Positions 21,343-64,000 of a stretch of DNA of 64,000 nt are shown one piece after another. A program made the position numbers and the translations under genes. Positions within the stretch are counted from its first letter, which is position 1. Every line of letters begins with the position of its first letter. The stretch comes from Tubulanus polymorphus (Eukaryota > Animalia > Nemertea): contig NC_134033.1 of NCBI RefSeq assembly GCF_964204645.1, positions 13,400,655 to 13,464,654 on the forward strand, read 5' to 3'. Below the pieces are notes generated by a model. That model did not search any database. It was not told where the DNA came from and was given only the letters and a program-made list of their open reading frames with translations.

Positions 21343-23853
<2,511 letters not shown>

Positions 23854-26024
23854 ATGATCATCCGTCGTTATTTATAGCGGAATAAACACTTTTAAAATTC
23901 GTGAGTCAGCGTAAGGCAATCGCCGTGACGCACGACGTGAAAGACTTCAACAATACTCGAGATTCGCTCAAACGTTTTTTATCGCTGATAATGAAAATCG
24001 TGGTGATGATTTATATTCAATATGTAAATTGATTTCACTCTCAGAATATGTTGGAGACATTAATCGAACTTAGCATCGTCAATTACGATGAATTCTGTGC
24101 TGAATGAAATACTGTAGATCCTGGTTTATTATGACAGCTCCTCATTACACATGGTATTTTATATGAATTAATGTTCGAATGGACGATACTATCCTGATTA
24201 GAGGTGGATTAAGCAGAGTTTACCGCAGTTTAATTCTAGATACAATCATGTTCGTTGAGTTGTATATATATATATCTGTCTCGGTGGAATTTATGAATTT
24301 GATTGCAGTAATTATAAAAGACAACTAGAGCTGCAAACTCATAGTAACGTTATATATACATTGTATATTATGTTAACTAGGTACCTGAGATATTTGCTTA
24401 CGCTCTATTTTTCTAATACACGTAAAAATTCTATTGAAATTTATTATTTTTCTCTCAATTGTTTGTATTATGGTTCGTTTCTTTGTTTTGGAATTTCGTC
24501 GCTTGGATCTTGGTTTTCCAAGACTAACCCTATTGGATTATTCATGATGATTATGTGATAATATTATCGAAAATGAATTATATGAATATGGGTCAAAGTT
24601 ATTTCAAATTGAATTGACCGGTAAACTAGCCGCAATATTGATGACGTAGCGAATTATAATAAAACACGAAACTTTATTAAATAGAAAATATAGTCACGAA
24701 ATATATTGAATTACAGAATGAACCCTGAAATTGTGTATAATCGTTATTTTGAAACGTCAATATGATTACGTAGTGCACACTATCGATCGACTCGCACAGT
24801 ACTAAATAACACATAGCCGTAGTATCAATTGTATAAAGACATTGTTGTCACGTGGTTATTAAAAACATAAGAAAACAAAAAAAAAAACAAAACATTAACA
24901 CTTTATAACAATAAATCAGAATGTGGAATTTTAGTATTATGTATCAACATTTTCTGATAACGGGATACTTATTGCATTAGACCCATTGCAGCCCTGAAGG
25001 GTCCATCTCGTGACAACGCCATATAATTACGTAACTATCAATACAATTAGTGATTTCAGGGTCACCAGAAATGTGTGAACGACCATAAGGCATATTATCA
25101 AAAATACATTAGGCTGAAAAAAACACGATACCTTGTTTCTCATAATGGGTCGGGTCATTTTGTAAACTACAATACAATTTGTAATCAAAACTGCCGGGTC
25201 TGCTATGGTTAGCGTTTTATGATATGAAAAAAGTAATGTACAGGGTAGATAGGCGGGCTACCGGGGAAACTTACAACGTACATGTATCAAATTTTCTAGC
25301 CTTCTAAGATGAATTTTTTGCTATGTACTACTAGTCTTCAACCGTCAGTGCTGGTTCCACAAAGGTCGTCACGTTAAAAAGGCGTTCCACGTTCCTATTC
25401 AGCCCGTGGAAAAAACGCGTACAGGAACATATGAACGTCTACATGTAGTACACAACACAGACAAGAATGGACGGTATTTTGAAGTATATGCAACTTTGAA
25501 TTGGAAATTAATGACAAACATTTTCATTTACAATCGATCACAGTAAAACTCGCATTAGAATCTTTGGTCATGTAATATTTTAGATACAGGGTAGAAATAG
25601 TGATATTGTGGCCATTAAGCTATCTAAACTTTCTAAACAAGACAAATTATTTTGATGATTTTGTTCTTGAACTAATTTGGTGTGCATTTTATTGAATGTC
25701 TCCCTCAGAATTGAGAGCAATGAAATGGGAGTTCTTTGATCGTTTCTATTACCGTTTACAATTTACTCGATGTATACGCATTCATTGGGGATAGAAAAAT
25801 CTGCACTTCTTACGGACGAGTTTGTCTCCTCGGAAATCATGATATAAACATAATACTGTTACGAAAAAAGATAATTGAAACAAGATATGTATAACAATTA
25901 ACAGAAAAGACTAGAAGTCTGACATAACTTCTAGTTTTCACGAAATTTAGGCCTGTCACGGATTGGGCAAATACAACAAGCTTCATAATCGCACGTCTAG
26001 TACGTCTTCAAAGACTAGATCAAT

Positions 26025-29000
26025 CTATATTGTATTCGTATCCGCTTCATCCTTCTCCAGGCGAAACAGTCCTCCAGGTTTGGGGGGCGAAACTTTGGGC
26101 CTCTTAATTTTGAACTGGAAAGAAATGAAAAAGGTGTAAATACCTGTCATCGGCATCGTCAGGTGTTAATACCTGTTTCATCCTGTTTCATACCTGTTCC
26201 TTTCTATCCACCGAAGAAGATTCCACCCCACCAAACAGAGTATCGAAATAGTTATACATATCGGAATCGGCGTCATCGTCGATTTCACGGGGTAACGAAG
26301 GTGAAGGTCGTCGTGTTTGGCGTGACGATGCCATAGAGTACCACGAAAAACGACTGAACGACATCCGGCCCATATCGCGTTCCAGCGATAAACTGCTTGC
26401 ATCCGTATTGACATGCTTTGAAAAATAGAAGGATAAAAACGGACGTGTATTTTTAAGGCTGTTATTAAAAGCTCATTTAAGCACATATAGATTACGCACT
26501 GGAGACAAATGCCACAAAAGGCATCGACAAAATTACTCAAAACTGAATCGAAATACATGTATATCTTATTACAAAATTTACACACCAACGGCAGATTGTA
26601 ACGACCTGTAGTGGAAAGTTGAGGTCTGGGAATTCTTGTTTCTTCATTGATTTGTCTCCAGAATAATGCTTCCACGGAAAGTGGATCCCGATGAAGGTTA
26701 CTGAAACAAAACCGATTAATAGGTTATACGTAGATAACATTTAAAAGAAACATTGCTATCAAAATAGAATGATGGTCACCTGGATTGTTGTCGTTTCTTC
26801 CTACGTCGTACGAAAATGATGATAACAGTAAATATGATGGCAATTAGTAGAACACCGAAAACTGCACCGAGAGAAATGGCTATCACGTTCTGTTCTGATG
26901 AGGCAACTACAGATTGAGCGGAACACTCAGATCCTGTATATGATTCGTTACATCTGCAAATTATACAAATAATCGATGATAAATAGACGGAGGTGATTAA
27001 TGAACCCCAGAATGCCCGTAGAAAATTATGCTTAAATTCAATCATAATAAATCACGAATTGCTTTGATCAATGATTATTGAATTCCTGATCAAGCCGATC
27101 AACTTACACACAGTACGGTTCACCAGACGCATGGGACGTATAGCATGCACCGTTTCCGCTACATGTGACTCCGTAACATCTATCTTCGCATTTTATATTC
27201 AATTGTGTTGATCTATTTGCGGGGTTGGCACACTTATATCCGAGCGGACATAGTGCCGGATTTACACGATAACACGGATCAATCGGATTCGATTTGTGTG
27301 ACTCTACGAATCAAGATAATGAATAACGATAACATAATATATTTTGATCGCACATCGTGTAATTAAAAGCTGTCGAAAAAACTTACTGATGAAATTTTTT
27401 TTCGTCCAATTCCTGTCAACCTTATACTGTTCGATACTGAAGTTATTACTAATAAGCCTTGGTAATACTTTATTATCGAGGTATTCAATAAGATTGACAT
27501 TATCGTTATCCTTAAGATACCTCAGCAAAACTGATGTGTTATACTCAACAATGTATTGATAAATAACGCTTCCATTCCTGCCAAGAACAGAAAATTTATG
27601 TGTCAGTAGTAAACCAAGAATAGATCTACAAATGAAATGTATCCACTTACGATAATCCTAACGTAACAATTCTCGATATAGGTGGACTTAAACCAAAGTG
27701 TTCATTTCCTACCTGAAATTTTTAGAAAGGGAGTAAACCGAACAGCGAAAGTGGCTTATTAGATAAATTCATTTTAAAATCACAAAATAAGAAAACTCAC
27801 CGCATGTCGTGCAATGTGCTCCAAAACATCAAACTCTCTTGATGTGTTGTCCGAAAAAGCTGGATTCCAGGAACGATTGATCTTTACAGAGAATGGCCCG
27901 ACGCTAGTTGTTTGTAAGTAACCTGAATTCAAAGAGCCGTAGATGTTTTGAATACTTATTAGTTAAGTAAAATGCAATTCATCATGATTCTACCAGTACT
28001 AACTTTTATCTGATATCGGTACATAGCGAGGACTAGGTGTTTGTGTGTCCACCATAGTGGAGCTGAGAGTCGAAAATGAAGTAGACGAATCGGTTGGTGT
28101 GGAACTCTCGGTGCTCATCGAGGAAACTACCGTAGTTGAGCTGACAATCGAGGATGAAGTAGACGAAGCCGTTGTGAAGGTCGTATCGGTGCTTGCCGAT
28201 GTCGATGTGTCTACCGTGGTGGATGTGTCAGTCGAGAACGAAGTAGACGAATCCGTTGCTGATGTCGTCTTGGTTCTTGCCGATGTCGATGTGTCTTCCG
28301 TTGTGGAGCTGGCAGTCGAGGACGAAGTAGACGAATCCGTTGGTGATGTCGTCACGGGGCTCGCCGATGTCGATGTGTAAACCGTAGTGGAGCTGACAGT
28401 CGAGGTTGAAATAGACGAATCTGTTGCTGATGTCGTCTCGGAACTCGCCGATGTCGATGTGTCTACTACCATGGTGGATGTATCAGTCGAGGACGATGTA
28501 GACAAATCCGTTGTTGAGGCCGTCTCTGTGCTCACCGAGGTTGATGTGTCCACCGTAGTGGAGGTGTCAGTCGAGGACGAAGTAGACGAATCTGTTGGTG
28601 ATGTAGTCTCGATGCGCAACGAGGTAGATATGTCTAACGTTGTTGAGCTGACAGTCGAAGATGAAGTAGACGAATCCGCTGGCGATGTCGTATCGGTGCT
28701 TGCCGAGGTCGATGTGTCTACCGTAGTGGAGGTGTCAGCCGAGGACGAAGTAGACGAATCCGTTGTGAAGGTCGTATCGGTACTCGCCGATGTCGATGTG
28801 TCTCCCGTAGTGGAGGTGTCAGTCGGCGACGAAGTAGACGAATCCGTTGGTGATGTCGTCACAGTGCTCGCCGAGGTCGATGTGTCTACCGCAGTGGAGG
28901 TGTCAGTCGAGGACGAAGTAGACGAATCCGTTGGAGATGTCGTCTCGGTGCTTGCCGATGTCGATGTGTCTACCGTAGTGGAGCTGAAAGTCGAGGATGA

Positions 29001-32000
29001 AGTAGACGAATCCGTTGGTGATGTCGTCTCGGTGCTCACCGAGGTCGATGTGTCTACCGTAGTGGAGGTGTCAGTCGATGACGAAGTAGACGAATCCGTT
29101 GGTGTTGTCGTCTCGATGCTCACCGAGGTCGATGTGTCTACCGTAGTGGATATGTCAGTCGAGGACGAAGTAGACGTATCCGTTGCTGATGTCGTCTCGG
29201 TGCTCGACGAGGTCGATGTGTCTACCGTAGTTGAGCTGACAGTCGAGGACGAAGTAGACAAATCCGTTGTTAAGGTCGTATCGGTACTCGCCGAGGTCGA
29301 TGTGTCTACCATAGTGGAGCTGACAGTCGAGGATGAAGTCGACGAATCCGTTGGTGTTGTCGTCTCGGTGCTCACCGATGTCGAAGTGTCTACCGTAGTT
29401 GATGTGTCAGTCGAGGATGAAGTAGACGAATCCATTGGAGATGTCGTCTTAGTGCTCACCGATGTCGATGTGTCTACCGTAGTGGATGCGTCAGTCGCGG
29501 ATGAAGTAGACGAATCCGTTGGTGATGTCGTATCGGTATTCGCCGAGGTCGATGTGTCTACCGTAGTGGATGTGTCAGTCGAGGATGTAGTCGACGAATC
29601 CGTTGGTGATGTCGTATCGGTACTCGCCGAGGTCGATGTGTCTACCGTAGTGGAGGTGTCAGTCGAGTATGAAGTAGTCGAATCCGTTGGTGATGTCGTC
29701 ACGGTGCTCGCCGACGTCGATGTGTCTACCGTGGTAAAGGTGTCAGTCGAAGACGAAGTAGACGAATCTGTTGTTAAGGTCGTATCGGTTCTCGCCGATG
29801 TCGATCTGGTCATCGAAGTGGGGCTGGTAGTTGAGGACGATGTAAATGAATCCGCTGATGAGGTCGACTCGGTGCTCGACGAGGTAGATCTGTCTATCGC
29901 AGAGGATGTGTCAGGTGAGGACGAAATTGACGAATCCGTTGGTGATGTCGTCTCGGTGCTCGCCGAGGTCGATGTGTCTACCGTAGTGGATGTGTCAGTC
30001 GAGGACGAAGTAGACGAATCCGTTGGTGATGTTGTCTCGGTGCTCGCCGATGTCGATGTATCTTTCGTAGTGGAGCTGACAGTCGAGGACGAAGTTGACA
30101 AATCCGTTGTCAAGGTCGTATCGGTACTCGCCGAGGTCGATGTGTCTACCGTAGTGGAGCTGACAGTCGAGGATGCAGTCGACGAATCCGTTGGTGTTGT
30201 CGTCTCGGTGCTCGCCGAGGTCGATGTGTCTACCGTAGTGGATGTGTCAGTCGAGGATGAAGTAGACAAATCCGTTGGTGATGTCGTATCGATACTCGCC
30301 GAGGTCGATGTGTCTACCGTAGTGGAGCTGACAGTCGAGGATGTAGTCGACGAATCCGTTGGTGATGTCGTCTCGGTGCTCGCCGATGTCGATGTGTCTA
30401 CCGTAGTTGATGTGTCAGTCGAGGATGAAGTAGACGAATCCGTTGGTGATGTCGTGTCGGTGCTCGCCGAGGTCGATGTGTCTACCGTAGTGGAGGTGTC
30501 AGTCGAGGACGAAGTCGACGAATCCGTTGTTAAGGTCGTATCGGTGCTCGCCGAGGTCGATGTGTCTACCGTAGTGGAGGTGTCAGTCGACGACGAAGTA
30601 GAAAAATCCATTGTTAAGGTCGTATCGGTAATCGCCGAGGTCGAAGTATCTGCCGAAGTGGATGTGTCAGTCGAGGACGAAGTAGACGAATCCGTTGCTG
30701 ATGTCGTCTCGGTGCTCGCCGATGTCGATGTGTCTACCGTAGTGGCGGTGTAAGTTGAGGATGAAGTAGACGAATCCGATGGTGATGTCGTCTCAGTGCT
30801 CGCCGATGTCGATGTGTCTACCGAAGAGGCGCTGACAGTCGAGGATGAAGTAGACGAATCCGTTGGTGATGTCGTCACGGTGCTCGCCGAAGTCGAAGTG
30901 TCTACCGTAGTGGAGGTGTCAGTCGAGGACGAAGTAGTCGAATCCGTTGGTGTTGTCGTTTCGGTGCTCACCGAGGTCGATGAGTCTACCGTAGTGGAGG
31001 TTTCAGTCGAGGACGAAGTAGACGATTCCGTTGCTGATGTCGTCTCGATGCTCGACGAGGTAGATGTGTCTACCGTAGTGGAGGTGTCAGTCGTGGACGA
31101 AGTTGACGAATCCGTTGGTGATGTCGTAACAGTGCTCGCCGAGGTCGATGTGTCTACCGTAGTGGAGGTGTCAGTCGAGGACGAAGTAGACGAATCCGTT
31201 GGTGATGTCGTCTCGGTGCTCGCCGATGTCGATGTGTCTACCGTAGTGGAGCTGAAAGTCGAGGATGAAGTAGACGAATCCGTTGGTGATGTCGTATCGG
31301 TGCTCACCGAGGTCGATGTGTCTACCGTAGTGGAGGTGTCAGTCGACGACGAAGTAGAAAAATCCGTTGGTAAGGTCGTATCGGTAATCGCCGAGGTCGA
31401 AGTATCTGCCGTAGTTGTGTCAGTCGAGGACGAAGTAGACGAATCCGTTGCTGATATCGACCCGGTGCTCGACGAGATAGATGTGTCTACCGTAGTTGAG
31501 CTGACAGTCGAGGACGAAGTAGACAAATCCGTTGTTAAGGTCGTATCGGTGCTCATCGAGGTCGATGTCTCTCCCGTAGTGGAGGTGTCAGTCGAGGACG
31601 AGGTAGACGAATCCGTTGTTAAGGTCGTATCGGTGCTCGCCGAGGTCGATGTGTCTACCGTAGTGGAAGTGTCAGTTGGGGACGAAGTAAACGAATCCGT
31701 TGGTGATGTCGTCACAGTGCTCGCCGAGGTTGATGTGTCTACCGTAGTGGAGGTGTCAGTCGAGGATAAAGTAGACGAATCCGTTGGAGATGTCGTCTCG
31801 GTGCTCACCGAGGTCGATGTGTCTACCGTAGTGGAGGTGTCAGTCGATGACGAAGTAGACGAATCCGTTGGTGATGTCGTCTCGGTGCTCGCTGAGGTCG
31901 AGGTGTCTACCGTAGAGGCGCTGACAGTCGAGGATGAAGTAGACGAATCCGTTGGTGATGTCGTCACGGTTCTTGCCGAGGTCGAAGTTTCTACCGTAGA

Positions 32001-35000
32001 GGCGCTGACAGTCGAAGATGAAGTAGAAAAATCCGTTGGTGATGTCGTCACGGTGCTCGCCGAGGTCGATGTGTCTACCGTAGTGGAGGTGTCAGTCGAG
32101 GACGAAGTCGACGAATCCGTTGTTAAGGTCGTATCGGTGCTCGCCGAGGTCGATGTGTCTACCGTAGTGGAGGTGTCAGTCGACGACGAAGTAGAAAAAT
32201 CCGTTGTTAAGGTCGTATCGGTAAGCGCCGAGGTCGAAGTGTCTACCGTAGTGGATGTGTCAGTCGAGGACGAAGTAGACGAATCCGTTGCTGATGTCTT
32301 CCTGGTGCTCGACGAGGTAGATGTGTCTACCATAGTCGAGCTGACAGTCGAGGATGAAGTCGACGAATCCGTTGGTGTTGTCGTCTCGGTGCTCACCGAG
32401 GTCGATGTGTCTACCGTAGTTGATGTGTCAGTCGAGGATGAAGTAGACGAATCCGTTGGTGATGTCGTCTCAGTGCTCGCCGATGTCGATGTGTCTACCG
32501 ATGAGGCGCTGACAGTCGAGGATGAAGTAGACGAATCCGTTGGTGATGTCGTCACGGTGCTCGCCGAGGTCGAAGTGTCTACCGTAGTGGAGGTGTCAGT
32601 CGAGGACGAAGTAGACGAATCCGTTGGTGATGTCGTCACGGTGCTCGACGAGGAAGATGTGTCTACCGAAGTTGAGCTGACAGTCGAGGACGTAGTAGAC
32701 AAATCCGTTGTTAAGGTCGTATCGGTACTCGCCGAGGTCGATGTGTCTACCGTAATGGAGCTGACAGTCGAGGATGAAGTCGACGAATCCGTTGGTGTTG
32801 TCGTCTCGGTGCTCACCGAGGTCGATGTGTCTATCGTAGTGGATGTGTCAGTCGAGGATGAAGTAGACGAATCCGTTGGTGATGTCGTATCGGTACTCGC
32901 CGAGGACGATGTGTCTACCGTAGTGGAGCTGACAGTCGAGGATGAAGTAGACGAATCCGTTTGTGATGTCGTGTCGGTGCTCGCCGAGGTCGATGTGTCT
33001 ACCGTAGTGGAGGTGTCAGTCGAGGATAAAGTAGACGAATCCGTTGGAGATGTCGTCTCGGTGCTTGCCGATGTCGATGTGTCTACCGTAGTGGAGCTGA
33101 CAGTCGAGGATGAAGTCGACGAATCCGTTGGTGTTGTCGTCTCGGTGCTCACCGATGTCGAAGTGTCTACCGTAGTTGATGTGTCAGTCGAGGATGAAGT
33201 AGACGAATCCATTGGAGATGTCGTCTTAGTGCTCACCGATGTCGATGTGTCTACCGTAGTGGATGCGTCAGTCGCGGATGAAGTAGACGAATCCGTTGGT
33301 GATGTCGTATCGGTATTCGCCGAGGTCGATGTGTCTACCGTAGTGGATGTGTCAGTCGAGGATGTAGTCGACGAATCCGTTGGTGATGTCGTATCGGTAC
33401 TCGCCGAGGTCGATGTGTCTACCGTAGTGGAGGTGTCAGTCGAGTATGAAGTAGTCGAATCCGTTGGTGATGTCGTCACGGTGCTCGCCGACGTCGATGT
33501 GTCTACCGTGGTAAAGGTGTCAGTCGAGGACGAAGTAGACGAATCTGTTGTTAAGGTCGTATCGGTTCTCGCCGATGTCGATCTGGTCATCGAAGTGGGG
33601 CTGGTAGTTGAGGACGATGTAAATGAATCCGCTGATGAGGTCGACTCGGTGCTCGACGAGGTAGATCTGTCTATCGCAGAGGATGTGTCAGGTGAGGACG
33701 AAATTGACGAATCCGTTGGTGATGTCGTCTCGGTGCTCGCCGAGGTCGATGTGTCTACCGTAGTGGATGTGTCAGTCGAGGACGAAGTAGACGAATCCGT
33801 TGGTGATGTTGTCTCGGTGCTCGCCGATGTCGATGTATCTTTCGTAGTGGAGCTGACAGTCGAGGACGAAGTTGACAAATCCGTTGTCAAGGTCGTATCG
33901 GTACTCGCCGAGGTCGATGTGTCTACCGTAGTGGAGCTGACAGTCGAGGATGCAGTCGACGAATCCGTTGGTGTTGTCGTCTCGGTGCTCGCCGAGGTCG
34001 ATGTGTCTACCGTAGTGGATGTGTCAGTCGAGGATGAAGTAGACAAATCCGTTGGTGATGTCGTATCGATACTCGCCGAGGTCGATGTGTCTACCGTAGT
34101 GGAGCTGACAGTCGAGGATGTAGTCGACGAATCCGTTGGTGATGTCGTCTCGGTGCTCGCCGATGTCGATGTGTCTACCGTAGTTGATGTGTCAGTCGAG
34201 GATGAAGTAGACGAATCCGTTGGTGATGTCGTGTCGGTGCTCGCCGAGGTCGATGTGTCTACCGTAGTGGAGGTGTCAGTTGAGGACGAAGTCGACGAAT
34301 CCGTTGTTAAGGTCGTATCGGTGCTCGCCGAGGTCGATGTGTCTACCGTAGTGGAGGTGTCAGTCGACGACGAAGTAGAAAAATCCATTGTTAAGGTCGT
34401 ATCGGTAATCGCCGAGGTCGAAGTATCTGCCGAAGTGGATGTGTCAGTCGAGGACGAAGTAGACGAATCCGTTGCTGATGTCGTCTCGGTGCTCGCCGAT
34501 GTCGATGTGTCTACCGTAGTGGCGGTGTAAGTTGAGGATGAAGTAGACGAATCCGATGGTGATGTCGTCTCAGTGCTCGCCGATGTCGATGTGTCTACCG
34601 AAGAGGCGCTGACAGTCGAGGATGAAGTAGACGAATCCGTTGGTGATGTCGTCACGGTGCTCGCCGAAGTCGAAGTGTCTACCGTAGTGGAGGTGTCAGT
34701 CGAGGACGAAGTAGTCGAATCCGTTGGTGTTGTCGTTTCGGTGCTCACCGAGGTCGATGAGTCTACCGTAGTGGAGGTTTCAGTCGAGGACGAAGTAGAC
34801 GATTCCGTTGCTGATGTCGTCTCGATGCTCGACGAGGTAGATGTGTCTACCGTAGTGGAGGTGTCAGTCGTGGACGAAGTTGACGAATCCGTTGGTGATG
34901 TCGTCACAGTGCTCGCCGAGGTCGATGTGTCTACCGTAGTGGAGGTGTCAGTCGAGGACGAAGTAGACGAATCCGTTGGTGATGTCGTCTCGGTGCTCGC

Positions 35001-38000
35001 CGATGTCGATGTGTCTACCGTAGTGGAGCTGAAAGTCGAGGATGAAGTAGACGAATCCGTTGGTGATGTCGTATCGGTGCTCACCGAGGTCGATGTGTCT
35101 ACCGTAGTGGAGGTGTCAGTCGACGACGAAGTAGAAAAATCCGTTGGTAAGGTCGTATCGGTAATCGCCGAGGTCGAAGTATCTGCCGTAGTTGTGTCAG
35201 TCGAGGACGAAGTAGACGAATCCGTTGCTGATATCGACCCGGTGCTCGACGAGATAGATGTGTCTACCGTAGTTGAGCTGACAGTCGAGGACGAAGTAGA
35301 CAAATCCGTTGTTAAGGTCGTATCGGTGCTCATCGAGGTCGATGTCTCTCCCGTAGTGGAGGTGTCAGTCGAGGACGAGGTAGACGAATCCGTTGTTAAG
35401 GTCGTATCGGTGCTCGCCGAGGTCGATGTGTCTACCGTAGTGGAAGTGTCAGTTGGGGACGAAGTAAACGAATCCGTTGGTGATGTCGTCACAGTGCTCG
35501 CCGAGGTTGATGTGTCTACCGTAGTGGAGGTGTCAGTCGAGGATAAAGTAGACGAATCCGTTGGAGATGTCGTCTCGGTGCTCACCGAGGTCGATGTGTC
35601 TACCGTAGTGGAGGTGTCAGTCGATGACGAAGTAGACGAATCCGTTGGTGATGTCGTCTCGGTGCTCGCTGAGGTCGAGGTGTCTACCGTAGAGGCGCTG
35701 ACAGTCGAGGATGAAGTAGACGAATCCGTTGGTGATGTCGTCACGGTTCCTGCCGAGGTCGAAGTTTCTACCGTAGAGGCGCTGACAGTCGAAGATGAAG
35801 TAGAAAAATCCGTTGGTGATGTCGTCACGGTGCTCGCCGAGGTCGATGTGTCTACCGTAGTGGAGGTGTCAGTCGAGGACGAAGTCGACGAATCCGTTGT
35901 TAAGGTCGTATCGGTGCTCGCCGAGGTCGATGTGTCTACCGTAGTGGAGGTGTCAGTCGACGACGAAGTAGAAAAATCCGTTGTTAAGGTCGTATCGGTA
36001 AGCGCCGAGGTCGAAGTGTCTACCGTAGTGGATGTGTCAGTCGAGGACGAAGTAGACGAATCCGTTGCTGATGTCTTCCTGGTGCTCGACGAGGTAGATG
36101 TGTCTACCATAGTCGAGCTGACAGTCGAGGATGAAGTCGACGAATCCGTTGGTGTTGTCGTCTCGGTGCTCACCGAGGTCGATGTGTCTACCGTAGTTGA
36201 TGTGTCAGTCGAGGATGAAGTAGACGAATCCGTTGGTGATGTCGTCTCAGTGCTCGCCGATGTCGATGTGTCTACCGATGAGGCGCTGACAGTCGAGGAT
36301 GAAGTAGACGAATCCGTTGGTGATGTCGTCACGGTGCTCGCCGAGGTCGAAGTGTCTACCGTAGTGGAGGTGTCAGTCGAGGACGAAGTAGACGAATCCG
36401 TTGGTGATGTCGTCACGGTGCTCGACGAGGAAGATGTGTCTACCGAAGTTGAGCTGACAGTCGAGGACGTAGTAGACAAATCCGTTGTTAAGGTCGTATC
36501 GGTACTCGCCGAGGTCGATGTGTCTACCGTAATGGAGCTGACAGTCGAGGATGAAGTCGACGAATCCGTTGGTGTTGTCGTCTCGGTGCTCACCGAGGTC
36601 GATGTGTCTATCGTAGTGGATGTGTCAGTCGAGGATGAAGTAGACGAATCCGTTGGTGATGTCGTATCGGTACTCGCCGAGGACGATGTGTCTACCGTAG
36701 TGGAGCTGACAGTCGAGGATGAAGTAGACGAATCCGTTTGTGATGTCGTGTCGGTGCTCGCCGAGGTCGATGTGTCTACCGTAGTGGAGGTGTCAGTCGA
36801 GGACGAAGTAGACGAATCCGTTGGTGTTGTCGTCTCGGTGCTCACCGAGGTCGATGTGTCTACCGTAGTGGATGTGTCAGTCGAGGATGAAGTAGACGAA
36901 TCCATTGGTGATGTCGTATCGGTACTCGCCGAGGTCGATGTGTCTACCGTAGTGGAGCTGACAGTCGAGGATGTAGTCGACGAATCCGTTGGTGTTGTCG
37001 TATCGGTACTCGCCGAGGTCGATGTGTCTACCGTAGAGGAGCTGACAGTCGAGGATGAAGTCGACGAATCCGTTGGTATTGTCGTCTCGGTGCTCACCGA
37101 AGTCGATGTGTCTACCGTAGTTGATGTGTCTGTCGAGGATGAAGTAGACGAATAGATTGGTGATGTCGTATCGGTGCTCACCGAGGTCGATGTGTCTATC
37201 GTAGTGGAGGTGTCAGTCGAGGACGAGGTAGACGAATCCGTTGTTAAGGTCGTATCGGTGCTCGCCGAGGTCGATGTGTCTACCGTAGTGGAAGTGTCAG
37301 TCGAGGACGAAGTAGACGAATCCGTTGGTGATGTCGTCTCGGTGCTCGCCGATGTTGATGTGTCCACCGTAGTGGAGGTGTCAGTCGAGGACGAAGTAGA
37401 CGAATCCGTTGGTGATGTCGTCTCGGTGCTCGACGAGGTCGATGTGTCTACCGTAGTTGAGCTGACAGTCGAGGACGAAGTAGACAAATCCGTTGTTGAG
37501 GTCGTATCGGTACTCACCGAGGTCGATGTGTCTACCGTAGTGGAGCTGACAGTCGAGGATGAAGTAGACGAATCCGTTGGTGATGTCGTCACGGTGCTCG
37601 ACGAGGTCGATGTGTTTACCGTAGTTGAGCTGACAGTCGAGGATAAAGTAGACAAATCCGTTGTTGAGGTCGTATCGGTACTCACCGAGGTCGATGTGTC
37701 TACCGTAGTGGAGGTGTCAGTCGAGGACGAAGTAGACGAATCCGTTGGTGATGTCGTCTCGGTGCTCGCCGATGTTGATGTGTCCACCGTAGTGGAGGTG
37801 TCAGTCGAGGACGAAGTAGACGAATCCGTTGGTGATGTCGTCTCGGTCCTCGACGAGGTCGATGTGTCTACCGTAGTTGAGCTGACAGTCGAGGACGAAG
37901 TAGACAAATCCGTTGTTGAGGTCGTATCGGTACTCACCGAGGTCGATGTGTCTACCGTAGTGGAGCTGACAGTCGAGGATGAAGTAGACGAATCCGTTGG

Positions 38001-53000: not shown

Positions 53001-56000
53001 GACAGTCGAGGATGAAGTAGACGAATCCGTTGGTGATGTCGTCTCGGTGCTCGCCGATGTCGATGTGTCTACCGTAGTTGATATGTCCGTCGAGGATGAA
53101 GTAGACGAATCCGTTGGTGATGTCGTCTCGGTGCTCGCCGATGTCGATGTGTCTACCGTAGTTGATGTGTCAGTCGAGGATGAAGTAGACGAATCCGTTG
53201 GTGATGTCGTCTCGGTGCTCGCCGATGTTGATGTGTCTACCGTAGTTGATGTGTCAGTCGAGGATGAAGTAGACGAATCCGTTGGTGATGTCGTCACGGT
53301 GCTCGCCGATGTCGATGTATCTACCGTAGAGGCGCTGACAGTCGAGGATGAAGTAGACGAATCCGTTGGTGATGACGTCACGGTGCTCGCCGAGGTCGAT
53401 GTGTCTACCGTAGTGGAGGTGTCAGTCGAGGACGAAGTCGACGAATCCGTTGTAAAGGTCGTATCGGTGCTCACCGATGTCGATGTATCTATCGTAGTGG
53501 AGGTGTCAGTCGAGGATGAAGTAGACGAATCCGTTGGTGATGTCGTATCGGTGCTCACCGAGGTCGATGTGTCTACCGTAGTTAATGTGTCAGTCGAGGA
53601 TGAAGTAGACGAATCCGTTGGTGATGTCGTATCGGTACTCGCCGAGGTCGATGTGTCTACCGTAGTGGAGCTGACAGATGAGGATGAAGTAGACGAATCC
53701 GTTGGTGATGTCGTCTCGATGCTCACCGATGTCGATGTGTCTACCGTAGTTGATGTGTCAGTCGAGGATGAAGTAGACGAATCCGTTGGTGATGTCGTCA
53801 CGGTGCTCGCCGATGTCGATGTGTCTACCGTAGTTGATGTGTCAGTCGAGGATGAAGTAGACGAATCCGTCGGTGTTGTCGTCACGGTGCTCGCCAAGGT
53901 CGAAGTGTCTACCGTAGTTGATGTGTCAGTTGAGGATGAAGTAGACGAATCCGTTGGTGATGTCGTATCGGTGCTCACCGAGGTCGATGTGTCTACCGTA
54001 GTTGATGTGTCAGTCGAGGACGAGGTAGACGAATCCGTTGTTAAGGTCGTATCGGTGCTCGCCGAGGTCGATGTGTCTACCGTAGTTGATGTGTCAGTTG
54101 AGGATGAAGTAGACGAATCCGATGGTGATGTCATCACGGTTCTCGCCGAGGTCGAAGTGTCTACCGTAGTTGATGTGTCAGTTGAGGATGAAGTAGACGA
54201 ATCCGTTGGTGATGTCGTCTCGGTGCTCGCCGATGTCGATATGTCTACCGAAGAGGCGCTGACAGTCGAGGATGAAGTAGACGAATCCGTTGGTGATGTC
54301 GTATCGGTGCTCACCGAGGTCGATGTGTCTATCGTAGTGGAGGTGTCAGTCGAGGACGAGGTAGACGAAACCGTTGTTAAGGTCGTATCGGTGCTCGCCG
54401 AGGTCGATGTGTCTACCGTAGTGGAGGTGTCAGTCGAGGACGAAGTAGACGAATCGGTTGGTGATGTCGTCTCGGTGCTCGTCGATGTTGATTTGTCCAC
54501 CGTAGTGGAGGTGTCAGTCGAGGACGAAGTAGACGAATCCGTTGGTGATGTCGTCTCGGTGCTCGACGAGGTCGATGTGTCTACCGTAGTTGAGCTGACA
54601 GTCGAGGACGAAGTAGACAAATCCGTTGTTGAGGTCGTATCGGTACTCACCGATGTCGATGTGTCTACCGTAGTGGAGGTGTCAGTCGAGGACAAATTAG
54701 ACGAATCCGTTGGTGATGTCGTCTCGGTGCTCGCCGATGTTGATGTGTCCACCGTAGTGGAGGTGTCAGTCGAGGACGAAGTAGACGAATCCGTTGGTGA
54801 TGTCGTCTCGGTGCTCGACGAGGTCGATGTGTCTACCGTAGTTGAGCTGACAGTCGAGGACGAAGTAGACAAATCCGTTGTTGAGGTCGTATCGGTACTC
54901 ACCGAGGTCGATGTGTCTTCCGTAGTGGAGCTGACAGTCGAGGATAAAGTAGACGAATCCGTTGGTGATGTCGTCACGGTGCTCGCCGAGGTCGATGTGT
55001 CTACCGTAGTTGATGTGTCAGTCGAGGACGAAGTGGACGAATCCGTTGTAAAGGTCGTATCGGTGCTCACCGAGGTCGATGTGTCTACCGTAGTGGAGGT
55101 GTCAGTCGAGGATGAAGTAGACGAATCCGTTGGTGATGCCGTCACGGTACTCGCCGAGGTCGATGTGTCTACCGAAGAGGAGCTTACAGTCGAGGATGAA
55201 GTCGACGAATCCGTTGGTGTTGTCGTCTCGGTACTCGCCGAGATCGATGTGTCTACCGTAGAGGAGCTTACAGTCGAGGATGAAGTAGACGAATCCGTTG
55301 GTGATATCGTATCGGTACTCGCCGAGGTCGATGTGTCTACCGTAGTGGAGCTGACAGTCGAGGATAAAGTAGACGAATCCGTTGGTGATGTCGTGTCGGT
55401 GCTCGCCGAGGTCGATGTGTCTACCGTAGTTGATGTGTCAGTCGAGGATGAAGTAGACGAATCCGTTGGTGATGTCGTATCTGTGCTCACCGAGGTCGAT
55501 GTGTCTACCGTAGTTGATGTGTCAGTCGAGGATGAAGTAGACGAATCCGTTGGTGATGTCGTATCGGTACTCGCCGAGGTCGATGTGTCTACCGTAGTGG
55601 AGCTGACAGTGGAGGATGAAGTAGACGAATCCGTTGGTGATGTCGTCTCGGTGCTGGCCGATGTGGATGTGTCTACCGTAGTTGATATGTCTGTCGAGGA
55701 TGAAGTAGACGAATCCGTTGGTGATGTCGTCTCGATGCTCGCCGATGTCGATGTGTCTACCGTAGTTGATGTTTCAGTCGAGGATGAAGTAGACGAATCC
55801 GTTGGTGATGTCGTCTCGGTGCTCGCCGATGTCGATGTGTCTACCGTAGTTGATGTGTCAGTCGAGGATGAAGTAGACGAATCCGTTGGTGATGTCGTAT
55901 CGGTGCTCACCGAGGTCGATGTGTCTACCGTAGTTGATGTGTCAGTCGAGGATGAAGTAGATGAATCCGTTGGTGATGTCGTCTCAATGCTCGCCGATGT

Positions 56001-59000
56001 CGATGTGTCTACCGTAGTTGATGTGTCAGTCGAGGATGAAGTAGACGAATCCGTTGGTGATGTCGTCTCGATGCTCGCCGATGTCGATGTGTCTACCGTA
56101 GTTGATGTGTCAGTCGAGGATGAAGTAGACGAATACGTTGGTGATGTCGTCTCGGTGCTCGCCGATGTCGATGTGTCTACCGTAGTTGATATGTCAGTCG
56201 AGAATATAGTAGACGAATCCGTTGGTGATGTCGTATCGGTGCTCACCGAGGTCGATGTGTCTATTGTAGTGGAGTTGTCAGTCGAGGACGAGGTAGACGA
56301 ATCCGTTGTTAAGGTCGTATCGGTGCTCACCGAGGTCGATGTGTCTACCGTAGTGGATGTGTCAGTCGAGGATGAAGTAGACGAATCCGTTGGTGATGTC
56401 GTATCTGTGCTCACCGAGGTCGATGTGTCTACCGTAGTTGATGTGTCAGTCGAGGATGAAGTAGACGAATCCGTTGGTGATGTCGTATCGGTACTCGCCG
56501 AGGTCGATGTGTCTACCGTAGTGGAGCTGACAGTGGAGGATGAAGTTGACGAATCGGTTGGTGATGTCGTCTCGGTGCTGGCCGATGTGGATGTGTCTAC
56601 CGTAGTTGATATGTCTGTCGAGGATGAAGTAGACGAATCCGTTGGTGATGTCGTATCGGTACTCGCCGAGGTCGATGTGTCTACCGTAGTGGAGCTGACA
56701 GTCGAGGATAAAGTAGACGAATCCGTTGGTGATGTCGTATCGGTACTCACCGAGGTCGATGTGTCTACCGTAGTTGAGCTGACAGTCGAGGATGAAGTAG
56801 ACGAATCCGTTGGTGATGTCGTCACGGTGCTCGCCGAGGTCGATGTGTCTACCGTAGTGGAGGTGTCAGTCGAGGACGAAGTCGACGAATCCGTTGTAAA
56901 GGTCGTATCGGTGCTCACCGAGGTCGATGTGTCTATCGTAGTGGAGGTGTCAGTCGAGGATGAAGTCGACGAATCCGTTGGTGATGTCGTATCGGTACTC
57001 GCCGAGGTCGATGTGTCTACCGTAGTGGAGCTGACAGTCGAGGATAAAGTAGACGAATCCGTTGGTGATGTCGTGTCGGTGCTCGCCGAGGTCGATGTGT
57101 CTACCGTAGTGGAGGTGTCAGTCGAGGACGAAGTAGTCGAATCCGTTGGTGTTGTCGTTTCGGTGCTCACCGAGGTCGATGTGTCTACCGTAGTGGATGT
57201 GTCAGTCGAGGATGAAGTAGACGAATCCGTTGGTGATGTCGTATCGGTGCTCACCGAGGTCGATGTGTCTACCGTAGTTGATGTGTCAGTCGAGGATGAA
57301 GTAGACGAATCCGTTGGTGATGTCGTATCGGTACTCGCCGAGGTCGATGTGTCTACCGTAGTGGAGCTGACAGTGGAGGATGAAGTAGACGAATCCGTTG
57401 GTGATGTCGTCTCGATGCTCACCGATGTCGATGTGTCTACCGTAGTTGATGTGTCAGTCGAGGATGAAGTAGACGAATCCGTTGGTGATGTCGTCTCGGT
57501 GCTCGCCGATGTGGATGTGTCTACCGTAGTTGATATGTCTGTCGAGGATGAAGTAGACGAATCCGTTGGTGATGTCGTATCGATGCTCGCCGATGTCGAT
57601 GTGTCTACCGTAGTTGATGTGTCAGTCGAGGATGAAGTAGACGAATCCGTTGGCGATGTCGTCTCGGTGCTCGCCGATGTCGATGTGTCTACCGTAGTTG
57701 ATGTGTCAGTCGAGGATGAAGTAGACGAATCCGTTGGCGATGTCGTATCGGTGCTCGCCGAGGTCGATGTGTCTACCGTAGTTGATGTGTCAGTCGAGGA
57801 TGAAGTAGACGAATCCGTTGGTGATGTCGTATCGGTACTCGCCGAGGTCGATGTGTCTACCGTAGTGGAGCTGACAGTCGAGGATGAAGTCGACGAATCC
57901 GTCGGTGATGTCGTATCGGTACTCGCCGAGGTCGATGTATCTACCGTAGTGGAGCTGACAGTCGAGGATGAAGTCGACGAATCCGTCGGTGTTGTCGTCT
58001 CGGTGCTCACCGAGGTCGATGTGTCTACCGTAGTTGATGTGTCAGTAGAGGATGAAGTAGACGAATCCGTTGTAAAGGTCGTATCGGTGCTCACCGATGT
58101 CGATGTATCTATCGTAGTGGAGGTGTCAGTCGAGGATGAAGTAGACGAATCCGTTGGTGATGTCGTATCGGTGCTCACCGAGGTCGATATGTCTACCGTA
58201 GTGGAGCTGACAGTGGAGGATGAAGTAGACGAATCCGTTGGTGATGTCGTCTCGGTGCTCGACGAGGTCGATGTGTCTACCGTAGTTGAGCTGACAGTCG
58301 AGGACGAAGTAGACAAATCCGTTGTAAAGGTCGTATCGGTGCTCACCGATGTCGATGTATCTATCGTAGTTGATGTGTCAGTCGAGGATGAAGTAGACGA
58401 ATCCGTTGGTGATGTCGTATCGGTACTCACCGAGGTCGATGTGTCTACCGTAGTGGAGCTGACAGTGGAGGATGAAGTAGACGAATCCGTTGGTGATGTC
58501 GTTACGGTGCTCGCCGAGGTCGAAGTGTCTACCGTAGTTGATGTGTCAGTTGAGGATGAAGTTGACGAATCCGTTGATGATGTCGTCTCGGTGTTCGCCG
58601 ATGTCGATATGTCTACCGTAGAGGCGCTGACAGTCGAGGATGAAGTAGACGAATCCGTTGGTGATGTCGTCTCGGTGCTCGCCGATGTCGATGTGTCTAC
58701 CGTAGTTGATATGTCTGTCGAGGATGAAGTAGACGAATCCGTTGGTGATGTCGTCACGGTGCTCGCCGATGTCGATGTATCTACCGGAGAGCCGCTGACA
58801 GTCGAGGACGAAGTAGACGAATCCGTTGGTGATGTCGTCACGGTGCTCGCCGATGTCGATGTATCTACCGGAGAGGCGCTGACAGTCGAGGATGAAGTAG
58901 ACGAATCCGTTGGTGATGTCGTCTCGGTGCTCACCGATGTGGATGTGTCTACCGTAGTTGATGTGTCAGTCGAGGATGAAGTAGACGAATCCGTTGGTGA

Positions 59001-62000
59001 TGTCGTATCGGTGCTCACCGAGGTCGATGTGTCTATCGTAGTGGAGGTGTCAGTCGAGGACGAGGTAGACGAATCCGTTGTTAAGGTCGTATCGGTGCTC
59101 GCCGAGGTCGATGTGTCTACCGTAGTGGAGGTGTCAGTCGAAGACGAAGTAGACGAATCGGTTGGTGATGTCGTCTCGGTGCTCGTCGATGTTGATTTGT
59201 CCACCGTAGTGGAGGTGTCAGTCGAGGACGAAGTAGACGAATCCGTTGGTGATGTCGTCTCGGTGCTCGACGAGGTCGATGTGTCTACCGTAGTTGAGCT
59301 GACAGTCGAGGACGAAGTAGACAAATCCGTTGTTGAGGTCGTATCGGTACTCACCGAGGTCGATGTGTCTACCGTAGTGGAGGTGTCAGTCGAGGACAAA
59401 GTAGACGAATCCGTTGGTGATGTCGTCTCGGTGCTCGCCGACGTTGATGTGTCCACCGTAGTGGAGGTGTCAGTCGAGGACGAAGTAGACGAATCCGTTG
59501 GTGATGTCGTCTCGGTGCTCGACGAGGTCGATGTGTCTACCGTAGTTGAGCTGACAGTCGAGGACGAAGTAGACAAATCCGTTGTTGAGGTCGTATCGGT
59601 ACTCACCGAGGTCGATGTGTCTTCCGTAGTGGAGCTGACAGTCGAGGATAAAGTAGACGAACCCGTTGGTGATGTCGTCACGGTGCTCGCCGAGGTCGAT
59701 GTGTCTACCGTAGTTGATGTGTCAGTCGAGGACGAAGTAGACGAATCCGTTGTAAAGGTCGTATCGGTGCTCACCGAGGTCGATGTGTCTACCGTAGTGG
59801 AGGTGTCAGTCGAGGATGAAGTAGACGAATCCGTTGGTGATGCCGTCACGGTACTCGCCGAGGTCGATGTGTCTACCGAAGAGGAGCTTACAGTCGAGGA
59901 TGAAGTCGACGAATCCGTTGGTGTTGTCGTCTCGGTACTCGCCGAGATCGATGTGTCTACCGTAGAGGAGCTTACAGTCGAGGATGAAGTAGACGAATCC
60001 GTTGGTGATATCGTATCGGTACTCGCCGAGGTCGATGTGTCTACCGTAGTGGAGCTGACAGTCGAGGATAAAGTAGACGAATCCGTTGGTGATGTCGTGT
60101 CGGTGCTCGCCGAGGTCGATGTGTCTACCGTAGTTGATGTGTCAGTCGAGGATGAAGTAGACGAATCCGTTGGTGATGTCGTATCTGTGCTCACCGAGGT
60201 CGATGTGTCTACCGTAGTTGATGTGTCAGTCGAGGATGAAGTAGACGAATCCGTTGGTGATGTCGTATCGGTACTCGCCGAGGTCGATGTGTCTACCGTA
60301 GTGGAGCTGACAGTGGAGGATGAAGTAGACGAATCCGTTGGTGATGTCGTCTCGGTGCTCGCCGATGTCGATGTGTCTACCGTAGTTGATGTGTCAGTCG
60401 AGGATGAAGTAGACGAATCCGTTGGAGATGTCGTCTCGGTGCTCGCCGATGTCGATGTGTCTACCGTAGTTGATGTGTCAGTCGAGGATGAAGTAGACGA
60501 ATCCGTTGGTGATGTCGTATCGGTGCTCACCGAGGTCGATGTGTCTACCGTAGTTGATGTGTCAGTCGAGGATGAAGTAGACGAATCCGTTGGTGATGTC
60601 GTCTCAATGCTCGCCGATGTCGATGTGTCTACCGTAGTGGAGCTGACAGTGGAGGATGAAGTAGACGAATCCGTTGGTGATGTCGTCTCGATGCTCACCG
60701 ATGTCGATGTGTCTACCGTAGTTGATGTGTCAGTCGAGGATGAAGTAGACGAATCCGTTGGTGATGTCGTCTCGATGCTCGCCGATGTCGATGTGTCTAC
60801 CGTAGTTGATGTGTCAGTCGAGGATGAAGTAGACGAATACGTTGGTGATGTCGTCTCGGTGCTCGCCGATGTCGATGTGTCTACCGTAGTTGATATGTCA
60901 GTCGAGAATATAGTAGACGAATCCGTTGGTGATGTCGTATCGGTGCTCACCGAGGTCGATGTGTCTATTGTAGTGGAGTTGTCAGTCGAGGATGAAGTAG
61001 ACGAATCCGTTGGTGATGTCGTATCGGTGCTCGCCGAGGTCGATGTGTCTACCGTAGTTGATGTGTCAGTTGAGGATGAAGTAGACGAATCCGTTGGTGT
61101 TGTCGTTTCGGTGCTCACCGAGGTCGATGTGTCTACCGTAGTGGATGTGTCAGTCGAGGATGAAGTAGACGAATCCGTTGGTGATGTCGTATCTGTGCTC
61201 ACCGAGGTCGATGTGTCTACCGTAGTTGATGTGTCAGTCGAGGATGAAGTAGACGAATCCGTTGGTGATGTCGTATCGGTACTCGCCGAGGTCGATGTGT
61301 CTACCGTAGTGGAGCTGACAGTGGAGGATGAAGTTGACGAATCGGTTGGTGATGTCGTCTCGGTGCTGGCCGATGTGGATGTGTCTACCGTAGTTGATAT
61401 GTCTGTCGAGGATGAAGTCGACGAATCCGTTGGTGATGTCGTATCGGTACTCGCCGAGGTCGATGTGTCTACCGTAGTGGAGCTGACAGTCGAGGATAAA
61501 GTAGACGAATCCGTTGGTGATGTCGTATCGGTACTCACCGAGGTCGATGTGTCTACCGTAGTGGAGCTGACAGTCGAGGATGAAGTAGACGAATCCGTTG
61601 GTGATGTCGTCACGGTGCTCGCCGAGGTCGATGTGTCTACCGTAGTGGAGGTGTCAGTCGAGGACGAAGTCGACGAATCCGTTGTAAAGGTCGTATCGGT
61701 GCTCACCGAGGTCGATGTGTCTACCGTAGTTGATGTGTCTGTCGAGGATGAAGTAGACGAATCCGTTGGTGATGTCGTATCGGTGCTCACCGAGGTCGAT
61801 GTGTCTACCGTAGTTGATGTGTCAGTCGAGGATGAAGTAGACGAATCCGTTGGTGTTGTCGACTCGGTACTCACCGAGGTCGATGTGTCTACCGTAGTTG
61901 ATGTGTCAGTCGAGGATGAAGTAGACGAATCCGTTGGTGATGTCGTATCGGTGCTCACCGAGGTCGATGTGTCTATCGTAGTGGAGGTGTCAGTCGAGGA

Positions 62001-64000
62001 CGAGGTAGACGAATCCGTTGTTAAGGTCGTATCGGTGCTCACCGAGGTCGATGTGTCTAACGTAGTTGATGTGTCAGTTGAGGATGAAGTAGACGAATCC
62101 GTTGGTGATGTCGTCACGGTGCTCGCTGAGGTCGAAGTGTCTACCGTAGTTGATGTGTCAGTTGAGGATGAAGAAGACGAATCCGTTGGTGATGTCGTCA
62201 CGGTGCTCGCCGAGGTCGAAGTGTCTACCGTAGTTGATGTGTCAGTTGAGGACGAAGTAGACGAATCCGTTGGTGATGTCGTCTCGGTGCTCGCCGATGT
62301 TGATGTGTCCACCGTAGTGGAGGTGTCAGTCGAGGACGAAGTAGACGAATCCGTTGGTGATATCGTCTCGGTGCTCGACGAGGTCGATGTGTCTACCGTA
62401 GTTGAGCTGACAGTCGAGGACGAAGTAGACAAATCCGTTGTTGAGGTCGTATCGGTACTCACCGAGGTCGATGTGTCTTCCGTAGAGGAGCTTACAGTCG
62501 AGGATGAAGTAGACGAATCCGTTGGTGATATCGTATCGGTACTCGCCGAGGTCGATGTGTCTACCGTAGTGGAGCTGACAGTCGAGGATAAAGTAGACGA
62601 ATCCGTTGGTGATGTCGTGTCGGTGCTCGCCGAGGTCGATGTGTCTACCGTAGTTGATGTGTCAGTCGAGGATGAAGTAGACGAATCCGTTGGAGATGTC
62701 GTATCTGTGCTCACCGAGGTCGATGTGTCTACCGTAGTTGATGTGTCAGTCGAGGATGAAGTAGACGAATCCGTTGGTGATGTCGTATCGGTACTCGCCG
62801 AGGTCGATGTGTCTACCGTAGTGGAGCTGACAGTGGAGGATGAAGTAGACGAATCCGTTGGTGATGTCGTCTCGGTGCTGGCCGATGTGGATGTGTCTAC
62901 CGTAGTTGATATGTCTGTCGAGGATGAAGTTGACGAATCCGTTGGTGATGTCGTCTCGATGCTCGCCGATGTCGATGTGTCTACCGTAGTTGATGTGTCA
63001 GTCGAGGATGAAGTAGACGAATCCGTTGGTGATGTCGTCTCGGTGCTCGCCGATGTCGATGTGTCTACCGTAGTTGATGTGTCAGTCGAGGATGAAGTAG
63101 ACGAATCCGTTGGTGATGTCGTATCGGTGCTCACCGAGGTCGATGTGTCTACCGTAGTTGATGTGTCAGTCGAGGATGAAGTAGACGAATCCGTTGGTGA
63201 TGTCGTCTCAATGCTCGCCGATGTCGATGTGTCTACCGTAGTGGAGCTGACAGTGGAGGATGAAGTAGACGAATCCGTTGGTGATGTCGTCTCGATGCTC
63301 ACCGATGTCGATGTGTCTACCGTAGTTGATGTGTCAGTCGAGGATGAAGTAGACGAATCCGTTGGTGATGTCGTCTCGATGCTCGCCGATGTCGATGTGT
63401 CTACCGTAGTTGATGTGTCAGTCGAGGATGAAGTAGACGAATACGTTGGTGATGTCGTCTCGGTGCTCGCCGATGTCGATGTGTCTACCGTAGTTGATGT
63501 GTCAGTCGAGGATGAAGTAGACGAATCCGTTGGTGTTGTCGTCTCGGTACTCGCCGAGGTCGATGTGTCTACCGTAGAGAAGCTAACAGTCGAGGATGAA
63601 GTAGACGAATCCGTTGGTGATGTCGTGTCGGTACTCGCCGAGGTCGATGTGTCTACCGTAGTGGAGCTGACAGTGGAGGATGAAGTTGACGAATCCGTTG
63701 GTGATGTCGTCTCGGTGCTGGCCGATGTGGATGTGTCTACCGTAGTTGATATGTCTGTCGAGGATGAAGTAGACGAATCCGTTGGTGATGTCGTATCGGT
63801 ACTCGCCGAGGTCGATGTGTCTACCGTAGTGGAGCTGACAGTCGAGGATAAAGTAGACGAATCCGTTGGTGATGTCGTGTCGGTGCTCGCCGAGGTCGAT
63901 GTGTCTACCGTAGTGGAGGTGTCAGTCGAGGACGAAGTAGTCGAATCCGTTGGTGTTGTCGTTTCGGTGCTCACCGAGGTCGATGTGTCTACCGTAGTGG
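26025..64000 (-). CDS. Giant membrane-tethered mucin (PTS repeats - SEA - EGF-like - TM - cytoplasmic tail), 5' end outside window, >12,300 aa
   Basis: Repeat exon >=28004-64000 (donor AAA A|gttagt), then exons 27801-27922, 27651-27712, 27387-27577 (SEA-like, LSNGSVI), 27108-27303 and 26780-26953 (Cys-rich/EGF CSGNGAC...CVCNESYTGSEC, TM IAISLGAVFGVLLIAIIFTVIIIFV, stop-transfer RRRKKR), 26586-26700, 26194-26415, 26025-26114 (FKIKRPKV...TNTI*). All phases are consistent. Confidence 0.9.
28040..64000 (-). repeat. Coding tandem array, 84-bp (28-aa) unit made of two 42-bp half-units, about 430 copies in window
   Basis: Consensus STETTSPTDSSTSS/STDTSTTVDTSTSA; the frame is unbroken, with only in-frame 3-nt indels. 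Confidence 0.97.

Follow-up and report, generated by a model that had tools for sequence, protein, structure and literature searches.

The closest described counterparts of the gene treated here are the SEA-type tethered mucins of humans. That gene lies on the minus strand of a 64,000-nt window from the palaeonemertean ribbon worm Tubulanus polymorphus (contig C9:13,400,655-13,464,654 of a 268-Mb assembly in 77 contigs), and we take its enormous first exon, with considerable confidence, to be the principal exon of a gene for a membrane-tethered mucin. MUC3A, MUC12 and MUC17, which stand clustered head to tail at 7q22, each have one huge Ser/Thr-rich repeat exon followed by small exons for the SEA, EGF-like, transmembrane (TM) and tail segments, and the vertebrate proteins are organized as EGF-SEA-EGF. 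MUC16, likewise tethered and of giant size, has a very long exon rich in Ser/Thr (~22 kb) and many tandem SEA modules placed before the TM helix. MUC1, to our knowledge restricted to mammals, joins a tandem-repeat mucin domain to a SEA module with a G^SVVV-type site, a TM helix and a signalling tail, and has no EGF module. Lang, Hansson and Samuelsson, writing in PNAS in 2007, are said to have described SEA-type tethered mucins as a vertebrate feature. Among 296 human assemblies, the longest MUC1 allele array measures 7,408 bp, MUC4 repeat alleles reach 27,843 bp, and long-read haplotypes give MUC12 proteins of up to 23,080 amino acids (aa), encoded by what is called the largest human exon (2026 preprint; PMC13345508). 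The benchmark of 17-22 kb (MUC16, TTN) that an earlier note on this window had used for the largest human coding exons is therefore outdated.

The Tubulanus gene shares with the 7q22 genes the single huge repeat exon, the succession of small exons behind it and a paralogue placed head to tail; it differs from them in its single C-terminal EGF-like module, its content of Pro (3%) and Asp/Glu (12%), the presence of the start codon and leader within the array exon, and its occurrence in Nemertea. With MUC1 it has in common the tandem-repeat domain, the cleavage-site motif (here in a probable, divergent SEA module), the TM helix and the tail, whereas the MUC1 arrays are far shorter. With MUC16 it has in common the giant tethered form, the very long Ser/Thr-rich exon and, if the SEA-like module is one, the SEA position before the TM helix, but it carries one such module and its exon is about three times longer. 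No sequence homology was detected to MUC3A, MUC12 and MUC17 or to MUC1. Since no homology to the vertebrate members is detectable, the gene is not treated as their orthologue; as read from its sequence, it would work like a SEA-type tethered mucin without being a homologue of the vertebrate genes, and such a mucin in a spiralian suggests convergence. In size, the exon draws level with the record and does not surpass it several-fold, and it is of a known kind: its 23,259 codons match or slightly exceed the MUC12 maximum, the whole predicted product of ~23,650 aa standing against the longest MUC12 allele (PMC13345508). One account of ribbon worms mentions that they are covered in thick mucus (PMC6410017), which fits a heavy investment in mucin genes.

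The first coding exon and its repeat array

The earlier note had described the minus-strand frame as free of stops from the window edge to a phase-1 GT donor at 28003 and as still open at 64000, and both points hold. Within the window the frame is stop-free over 28002-63998 (11,999 codons) and ends in AAA A|GT TAG, with 28004 as the last exon base and the GT at 28003-28002; with 160 kb of further C9 sequence added (the extended coordinates carry on the window numbering), it remains stop-free over 28002-97787, i.e., 23,262 codons or 69,786 nt. There is no N in the 224 kb of assembly sequence around the two mucin genes. The fourth codon of the open frame is an in-frame ATG at extended position 97778 (contig C9:13,498,432), beyond the window, in the context ACAATGG. 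It opens a leader with basic residues (M-G-T-Y-V-Q-T-N-K-N-L-R), a 12-residue hydrophobic core and then T-R-A|E, a site with small residues at -3 and -1. Assigned by eye, this leader reads as a signal peptide, and the 5' end of the coding region and the probable signal peptide, which the note had proposed to seek by extending the window, lie at 97778.

The first coding exon thus runs from 97,778 to 28,004 on the minus strand and comprises the start codon, the leader and the array in 69,775 nt (23,259 codons); the size of about 36 kb given earlier was an underestimate by comparison with these ~69.8 kb. Adding the downstream exons gives a predicted product of 23,650 residues, and the polypeptide of exon 1 alone amounts to 2.27 MDa, with 17,041 Ser/Thr (73.3%), 12.4% Asp+Glu, 0.2% Lys+Arg and 3.0% Pro. 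At 28,000 the G+C content rises from ~38% to 52-54%, and the GC skew is constant and strong.

Tandem Repeats Finder (TRF) describes the window part as one 84-bp array (28044-64000, 428 copies, 88% matches), and the whole exon holds ~830 such units of 28 residues with the consensus T-D-S-S-T-S-S-S-T-D-T-S-T-T-V-D-T-S-T-S-A-S-T-E-T-T-S-P. The Ser/Thr-rich tandem repeats by which a mucin is recognized are therefore present in this exon, although its Pro content is low by the measure of a classical Pro/Thr/Ser (PTS) domain and to that extent speaks against the assignment. Among 816 in-phase units 381 are distinct, with 92.8% identity to the consensus, and most 2-kb windows along the array find their best match elsewhere in it at 92-97% identity. 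Only three blocks of ~3 kb, at lags of 3,777, 10,245 and 3,861, come close to identity (99.85-99.9%), and these show recent expansion. No foreign insertion was found inside the array, although high-copy repeats lie immediately outside it.

Coding character and assembled length of the array

Sequence statistics, the paralogue and the gene context all give good support to the reading of the array as coding. Over the 816 units, divergence from the consensus is 0.036, 0.061 and 0.119 at the first, second and third codon positions (Mann-Whitney p=1e-4), making third positions 2-3 times more variable than the other two, and synonymous single-base variants occur on average 31 times per site as against 15.5 for non-synonymous ones (p=1.3e-5). 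Nine one-step changes of the consensus would give a stop, and none of them is present as a stop (0/9), two occurring solely within doubly changed codons (TAT, TGG); stop-making variants are seen in 0/8 cases versus 19/36 for matched non-stop variants (position-2 C>A/C>G; Fisher p=0.0065). All 12 phase shifts are multiples of three (+3 seven times, +6 twice, +12 twice and -3 once), which agrees with what had been claimed of the indels before. Two other sense frames and two antisense frames contain 552-1,892 stops over the full array.

The same pattern recurs in a tandem paralogue that lies head to tail 5.7 kb upstream (extended 103,494-144,360; C9:13,504,148-13,545,014). Its open frame comprises 12,893 codons (38.7 kb, extended 105,682-144,360) and its unit consensus differs at 2/84 bases. 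Its units are more diverged, with 44 phase shifts of which 44 are multiples of three, a codon-position divergence of 0.068/0.089/0.159 (p=0.001) and no sense stops, compared with 10 for the best antisense frame. Both the ATG and the leader are conserved, with indels of 6 and 3 nt only, and upstream of the ATG the similarity decays and indels that are not multiples of three appear. Behind the array, the cassette DNA of the paralogue is 94% identical; identity is 98.4-100% in the exons and 92%, 85% and 63% in introns 5, 6 and the last one, and all splice sites are kept. The genome contains two copies of the cassette only, and no public protein of 300-955 aa matching the paralogue was found. Thus, codon-position divergence, synonymous excess, stop depletion, indels in multiples of three and their repetition in the paralogue together support the earlier proposal of selection on a protein rather than a non-coding satellite.

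Several observations pull in the opposite direction and restrict how this evidence can be used. Over the 69.8 kb the remaining antisense frame is interrupted by just 9 stops, and open stretches on the plus strand reach 11,150 codons. Because of this, a nearly open frame must be seen as a property of the repeat unit, an open frame by itself is weak evidence of coding, and the argument that an open frame equals selection was rejected as sufficient. The near-open antisense frame and the sense frame also have their third positions in common, so that periodicity alone cannot choose the strand; the sense strand is preferred for its count of stops (0 versus 9), its leader and its splice to the cassette. 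Further, because blocks of units have been duplicated, the variant counts are not independent events, and the restriction of indels to multiples of three could partly come from slippage on the triplet-like TCN/ACN substructure.

These observations feed a different account of the locus, in which the array would be a non-coding satellite (or transcribed and untranslated) upstream of a 546-aa gene, and its open frame a by-product of a recently expanded stop-free unit. The almost open antisense frame with its 9 stops, the RefSeq model that covers 546 aa only, the recent expansion evident in the 99.85-99.9% blocks and the lack of RNA support for the array would all sit well with it. However, a divergence of 3-8% separates most of the array from its nearest copy and leaves time enough for stops to arise. 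Three-base periodicity, stop depletion and indels solely in multiples of three are found in two arrays totalling 108 kb, and in both paralogues the far limit of the open frame coincides exactly with a conserved ATG and leader. The 546-aa model, for its part, begins at a Met within the repeat and has no signal peptide despite its type I topology. We therefore regard a satellite origin as very unlikely and retain the array as coding sequence.

A second concern is that long tandem arrays are difficult to assemble, and an over-expanded assembly was one of the two findings that the earlier note had named as fatal to its claim. Reads of an Illumina DNA run from a different sample and study (X5) were mapped to window positions 24,400-30,300 at 80% likeness, at which the reads from all arrays stack on 2.2 kb of array. 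The array bins total ~954,000 base-depth, which at 7.2-8.0x corresponds to 119-132 kb of array per haploid genome. The assembly predicts 110.5 kb by simulated 150-mers (69.0 kb for this gene, 37.2 kb for the paralogue and 4.3 kb for two loci on contig C4), so that the assembly is not over-expanded. The mean depth of 14.9 over the cassette bins is consistent with two copies at 7.2-8.0x. The existence of both gene copies also follows from a contig of run X2 that has the 14-nt intron deletion of the paralogue, and since near-identity is limited to blocks of ~3 kb, accurate long reads are able to place the array sequence. Weighing on the other side, the depth is a sum over all arrays that is not apportioned between the two genes and carries no correction for G+C bias.

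An artefact of assembly, either an over-expanded array or two alleles misplaced in tandem as two genes, would find some encouragement in the difficulty of such arrays, in the three internal blocks of 99.85-99.9% identity and in the inability of read depth to divide the length between the arrays. It appears hardly credible all the same: the independent depth indicates, if anything, more array than was assembled, the cassette depth is about twice single-copy, the X2 contig has the distinguishing deletion, the assembled stretch has no gaps (0), and the two genes differ in their introns (63-92% identical) and 3' flanks (82%) and are separated by unique DNA. The version with two alleles in tandem was rejected on read depth together with intron and flank divergence.

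The membrane-proximal cassette and the predicted splicing of the transcript

Eight small exons follow exon 1 (Table 1) and encode a SEA-like module, an EGF-like module, a TM helix and a cytoplasmic tail of ~150 residues. They are covered by the RefSeq model XP_074658466.1 ('uncharacterized protein LOC141911364 [Tubulanus polymorphus]', 546 aa), whose start is a Met within the repeat, 155 codons short of the array end, and which lacks a signal peptide. Its junctions match those derived by eye, including ...D-K-S|Y-L-Q..., i.e., the 28004>27922 junction that had been predicted to splice in frame; the 81-nt intron indeed restores the frame. Since a type I membrane protein would require a signal peptide that is absent from this model, the model can be considered truncated, probably because the repeat was masked before gene prediction.

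Table 1. Coding features of the giant mucin gene that fall within the window
Feature	Position	Strand	Basis
Window part of giant exon 1, 84-bp (28-codon) Ser/Thr/Asp-rich array	28004..64000	-	Open frame, TRF array, codon-position and indel statistics
Intron 1, 81 nt, GT..AG, phase-1 donor, in-frame TAG 28001-27999, AG acceptor 27924-27923	27923..28003	-	Sequence, RefSeq junction, identical splice sites in paralogue
Exon 2, start of SEA-like module	27801..27922	-	RefSeq model; sub-threshold Pfam SEA match
Exon 3, middle of SEA-like module, ends just before Gly-Ser site	27651..27712	-	RefSeq model
Exon 4, second half of SEA-like module, opens N-G-S-V-I-Y (like G^SVVV autoproteolysis motif)	27387..27577	-	RefSeq model, Pfam
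Exon 5, Cys-rich/EGF-like module	27108..27303	-	Pfam; 100% identical in paralogue
Exon 6, EGF-like end, 26-residue TM helix and RRRKKR stop-transfer	26780..26953	-	Weak TM/juxtamembrane profile matches
Exon 7, cytoplasmic tail part 1	26586..26700	-	RefSeq model; donor after CCG TTG as in RefSeq
Exon 8, cytoplasmic tail part 2, 74 codons	26194..26415	-	RefSeq model; 99.6% identical to paralogue, next intron 63%
Last coding exon, 29 codons and TAG stop 26027-26025	26025..26114	-	RefSeq model

The domains of the cassette are established to different degrees. For the profile searches XP_074658466.1 served as the contiguous cassette sequence. Its residues 290-372 match EGF_alliinase at 25.1 bits (cut-off 25) and, more weakly, EGF_Teneurin, EGF_2 and EGF, and there is one EGF-like module only, C-terminal of the SEA-like module. 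Behind it the 26-residue hydrophobic segment, the RRRKKR motif and the tail give a type I topology, and TM_ErbB1 is matched at 20.9 bits in the single-exon Pfam searches, under its cut-off. Of the SEA, EGF and TM exons announced earlier, the EGF-like and TM parts thus stand, by a Pfam match at cut-off and a hydrophobic helix, whereas the SEA part has been found at sub-threshold level. Pfam SEA (PF01390) matches residues 152-295 with E=0.024, colinear with profile positions 6-76 of 106. The sequence G-S-V-I-Y lies at the exon 3/4 boundary, ~64 residues into a module of 124 residues, and corresponds to a G^SVVV-type autoproteolysis motif, with cleavage itself being a prediction. The nearest language-model neighbours, which serve as a lead only, are SEA clusters (score 0.83). 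These features point to a probable divergent SEA module.

Against this identification must be set that the SEA match stays under the Pfam cut-off (15.2 bits versus 26.4), that a single-sequence AlphaFold2 model was unusable (predicted local distance difference test score 38), that exon 4 retrieved nothing but XP_074658466.1 itself from 1.84 billion representative proteins, and that the cassette found no homologue among proteins of 300-955 aa. The single-exon Pfam searches returned weak TM-profile matches and neither SEA nor EGF, no PDB SEA chain matched at E<=10, and 1,000 aa of the array had no homologue besides the RefSeq model. As the homologue searches returned the RefSeq model alone, no alignment could be built. 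The C-terminus, T-N-T-I, was also considered as a PDZ-ligand tail of the kind found in MUC3/12/17 and was rejected, its Asn at -2 misfitting class I by eye.

Whether the exon remains whole in the mature mRNA is a separate matter from whether it is coding. None of the sequencing runs recorded as containing the locus is an RNA run (the contigs of runs X1 and X2 are DNA, since they continue through introns), and a possibly-RNA run (X7) has no reads on the exons or the array; both facts detract from the case for a single exon. The array could be coding and the mRNA still not contain one 70-kb exon, if cryptic introns or alternative 5' splice sites cut out large parts and the usual protein were much shorter, an outcome that the earlier note had itself named as refuting its claim. 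Donor-like sites for such splicing are available in the array, whose sense strand has 30 GTGAGT and 239 GTGAG. Yet no polypyrimidine-YAG acceptor was found in the 69.8 kb of array, where the rate in the flank (0.18 per kb) predicts ~12, an absence that weakly favours an undivided exon. Without an internal acceptor, an internal donor could pair only with the acceptor of exon 2, and as GTG-AGT donors are in phase 0 and that acceptor is in phase 1, such products would be out of frame. In addition, the whole length has been held open by selection in both paralogues. Extensive internal splicing consequently seems rather unlikely.

We therefore incline, with some reserve, to the view that the 69,775 nt are transcribed and translated as one exon, which would be the longest or joint-longest coding exon documented in any animal, with a product of ~23,650 aa that rivals the longest human MUC12 allele, and that the PTS-SEA-EGF-TM build arose outside vertebrates, probably by convergence. 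If so, the gene sets or ties the upper limit of exon size for the animal spliceosome and ribosome, with an mRNA of >70 kb and a polypeptide that weighs 2.3 MDa prior to glycosylation; the record holder would be an animal well known for its mucus, and a tethered-mucin build regarded as characteristic of vertebrates would have a spiralian example too. In such a protein, the Ser/Thr of the array would be densely O-glycosylated and form a strongly anionic bottle-brush of micrometre length at the apical surface of the cell, while the SEA-like module may cleave itself, allowing the giant outer subunit to be shed into the mucus under mechanical load. Array length would change by unequal exchange between units, with selection purging stops and frameshifts. 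The locus is also a case of failed annotation, RefSeq giving 546 aa for a gene that probably encodes ~23,650 aa, and in many long-read genomes repeat-rich secreted proteins have probably been misannotated in the same way.

Other loci with the 84-bp unit and the neighbourhood of the gene

Outside the tandem pair, the unit is encountered at two loci on contig C4. At C4:593,000-602,999 (-), an open frame of 1,588 codons joins 2.3 kb of the 84-bp unit (94.6% identical to the consensus) to a different Thr/Ser/Pro/Glu repeat. At C4:1,503,000-1,522,999 (L022/L023; L022:456-1073, -), a different gene has short runs of the unit and at least three modules, each starting from N-T-F-Q/H-L-N-E-I-Y and containing F-F-R-Q-G-S-V-I-V, with a G^SV-type site, before a Ser/Thr stretch; a VWD domain adjoins these modules (Pfam 28.6 bits). 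By its sequence this gene looks like an alternation of SEA-like and mucin modules, and the 84-bp unit has been shared among several mucin-type genes.

In the window itself, the 3' flank of the mucin gene holds short high-copy repeats at 24400-24600 and 24990-25384 (Illumina depth ~270-490 as against ~7 for single-copy sequence) in which loose ends are numerous and an inverted joint occurs at 25141/25256; these repeats are probably transposon fragments. A dispersed repeat of ~285 bp lies at 22809-23094 and has at least 40 copies of 76-79% identity across contigs. The next gene downstream is on the opposite strand and encodes a RagA/Gtr1-type GTPase, of which one exon was recognized at 21876-22094 (+; Pfam PF04670, 94.8 bits). 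Farther on, a single open frame of 607 codons at 5449-7272 (-) is rich in Ser/Asn/Gln and has 0 Pfam families above threshold; its box R-F-R-V-V-K-I...F-K-R-G-R-W-V-C-F-D-F is presumably akin to the boxes at the N-terminus of long TSC22/bunched isoforms. Positions 2400-2700 are taken up by a long (TA)n/(TATATA) microsatellite.

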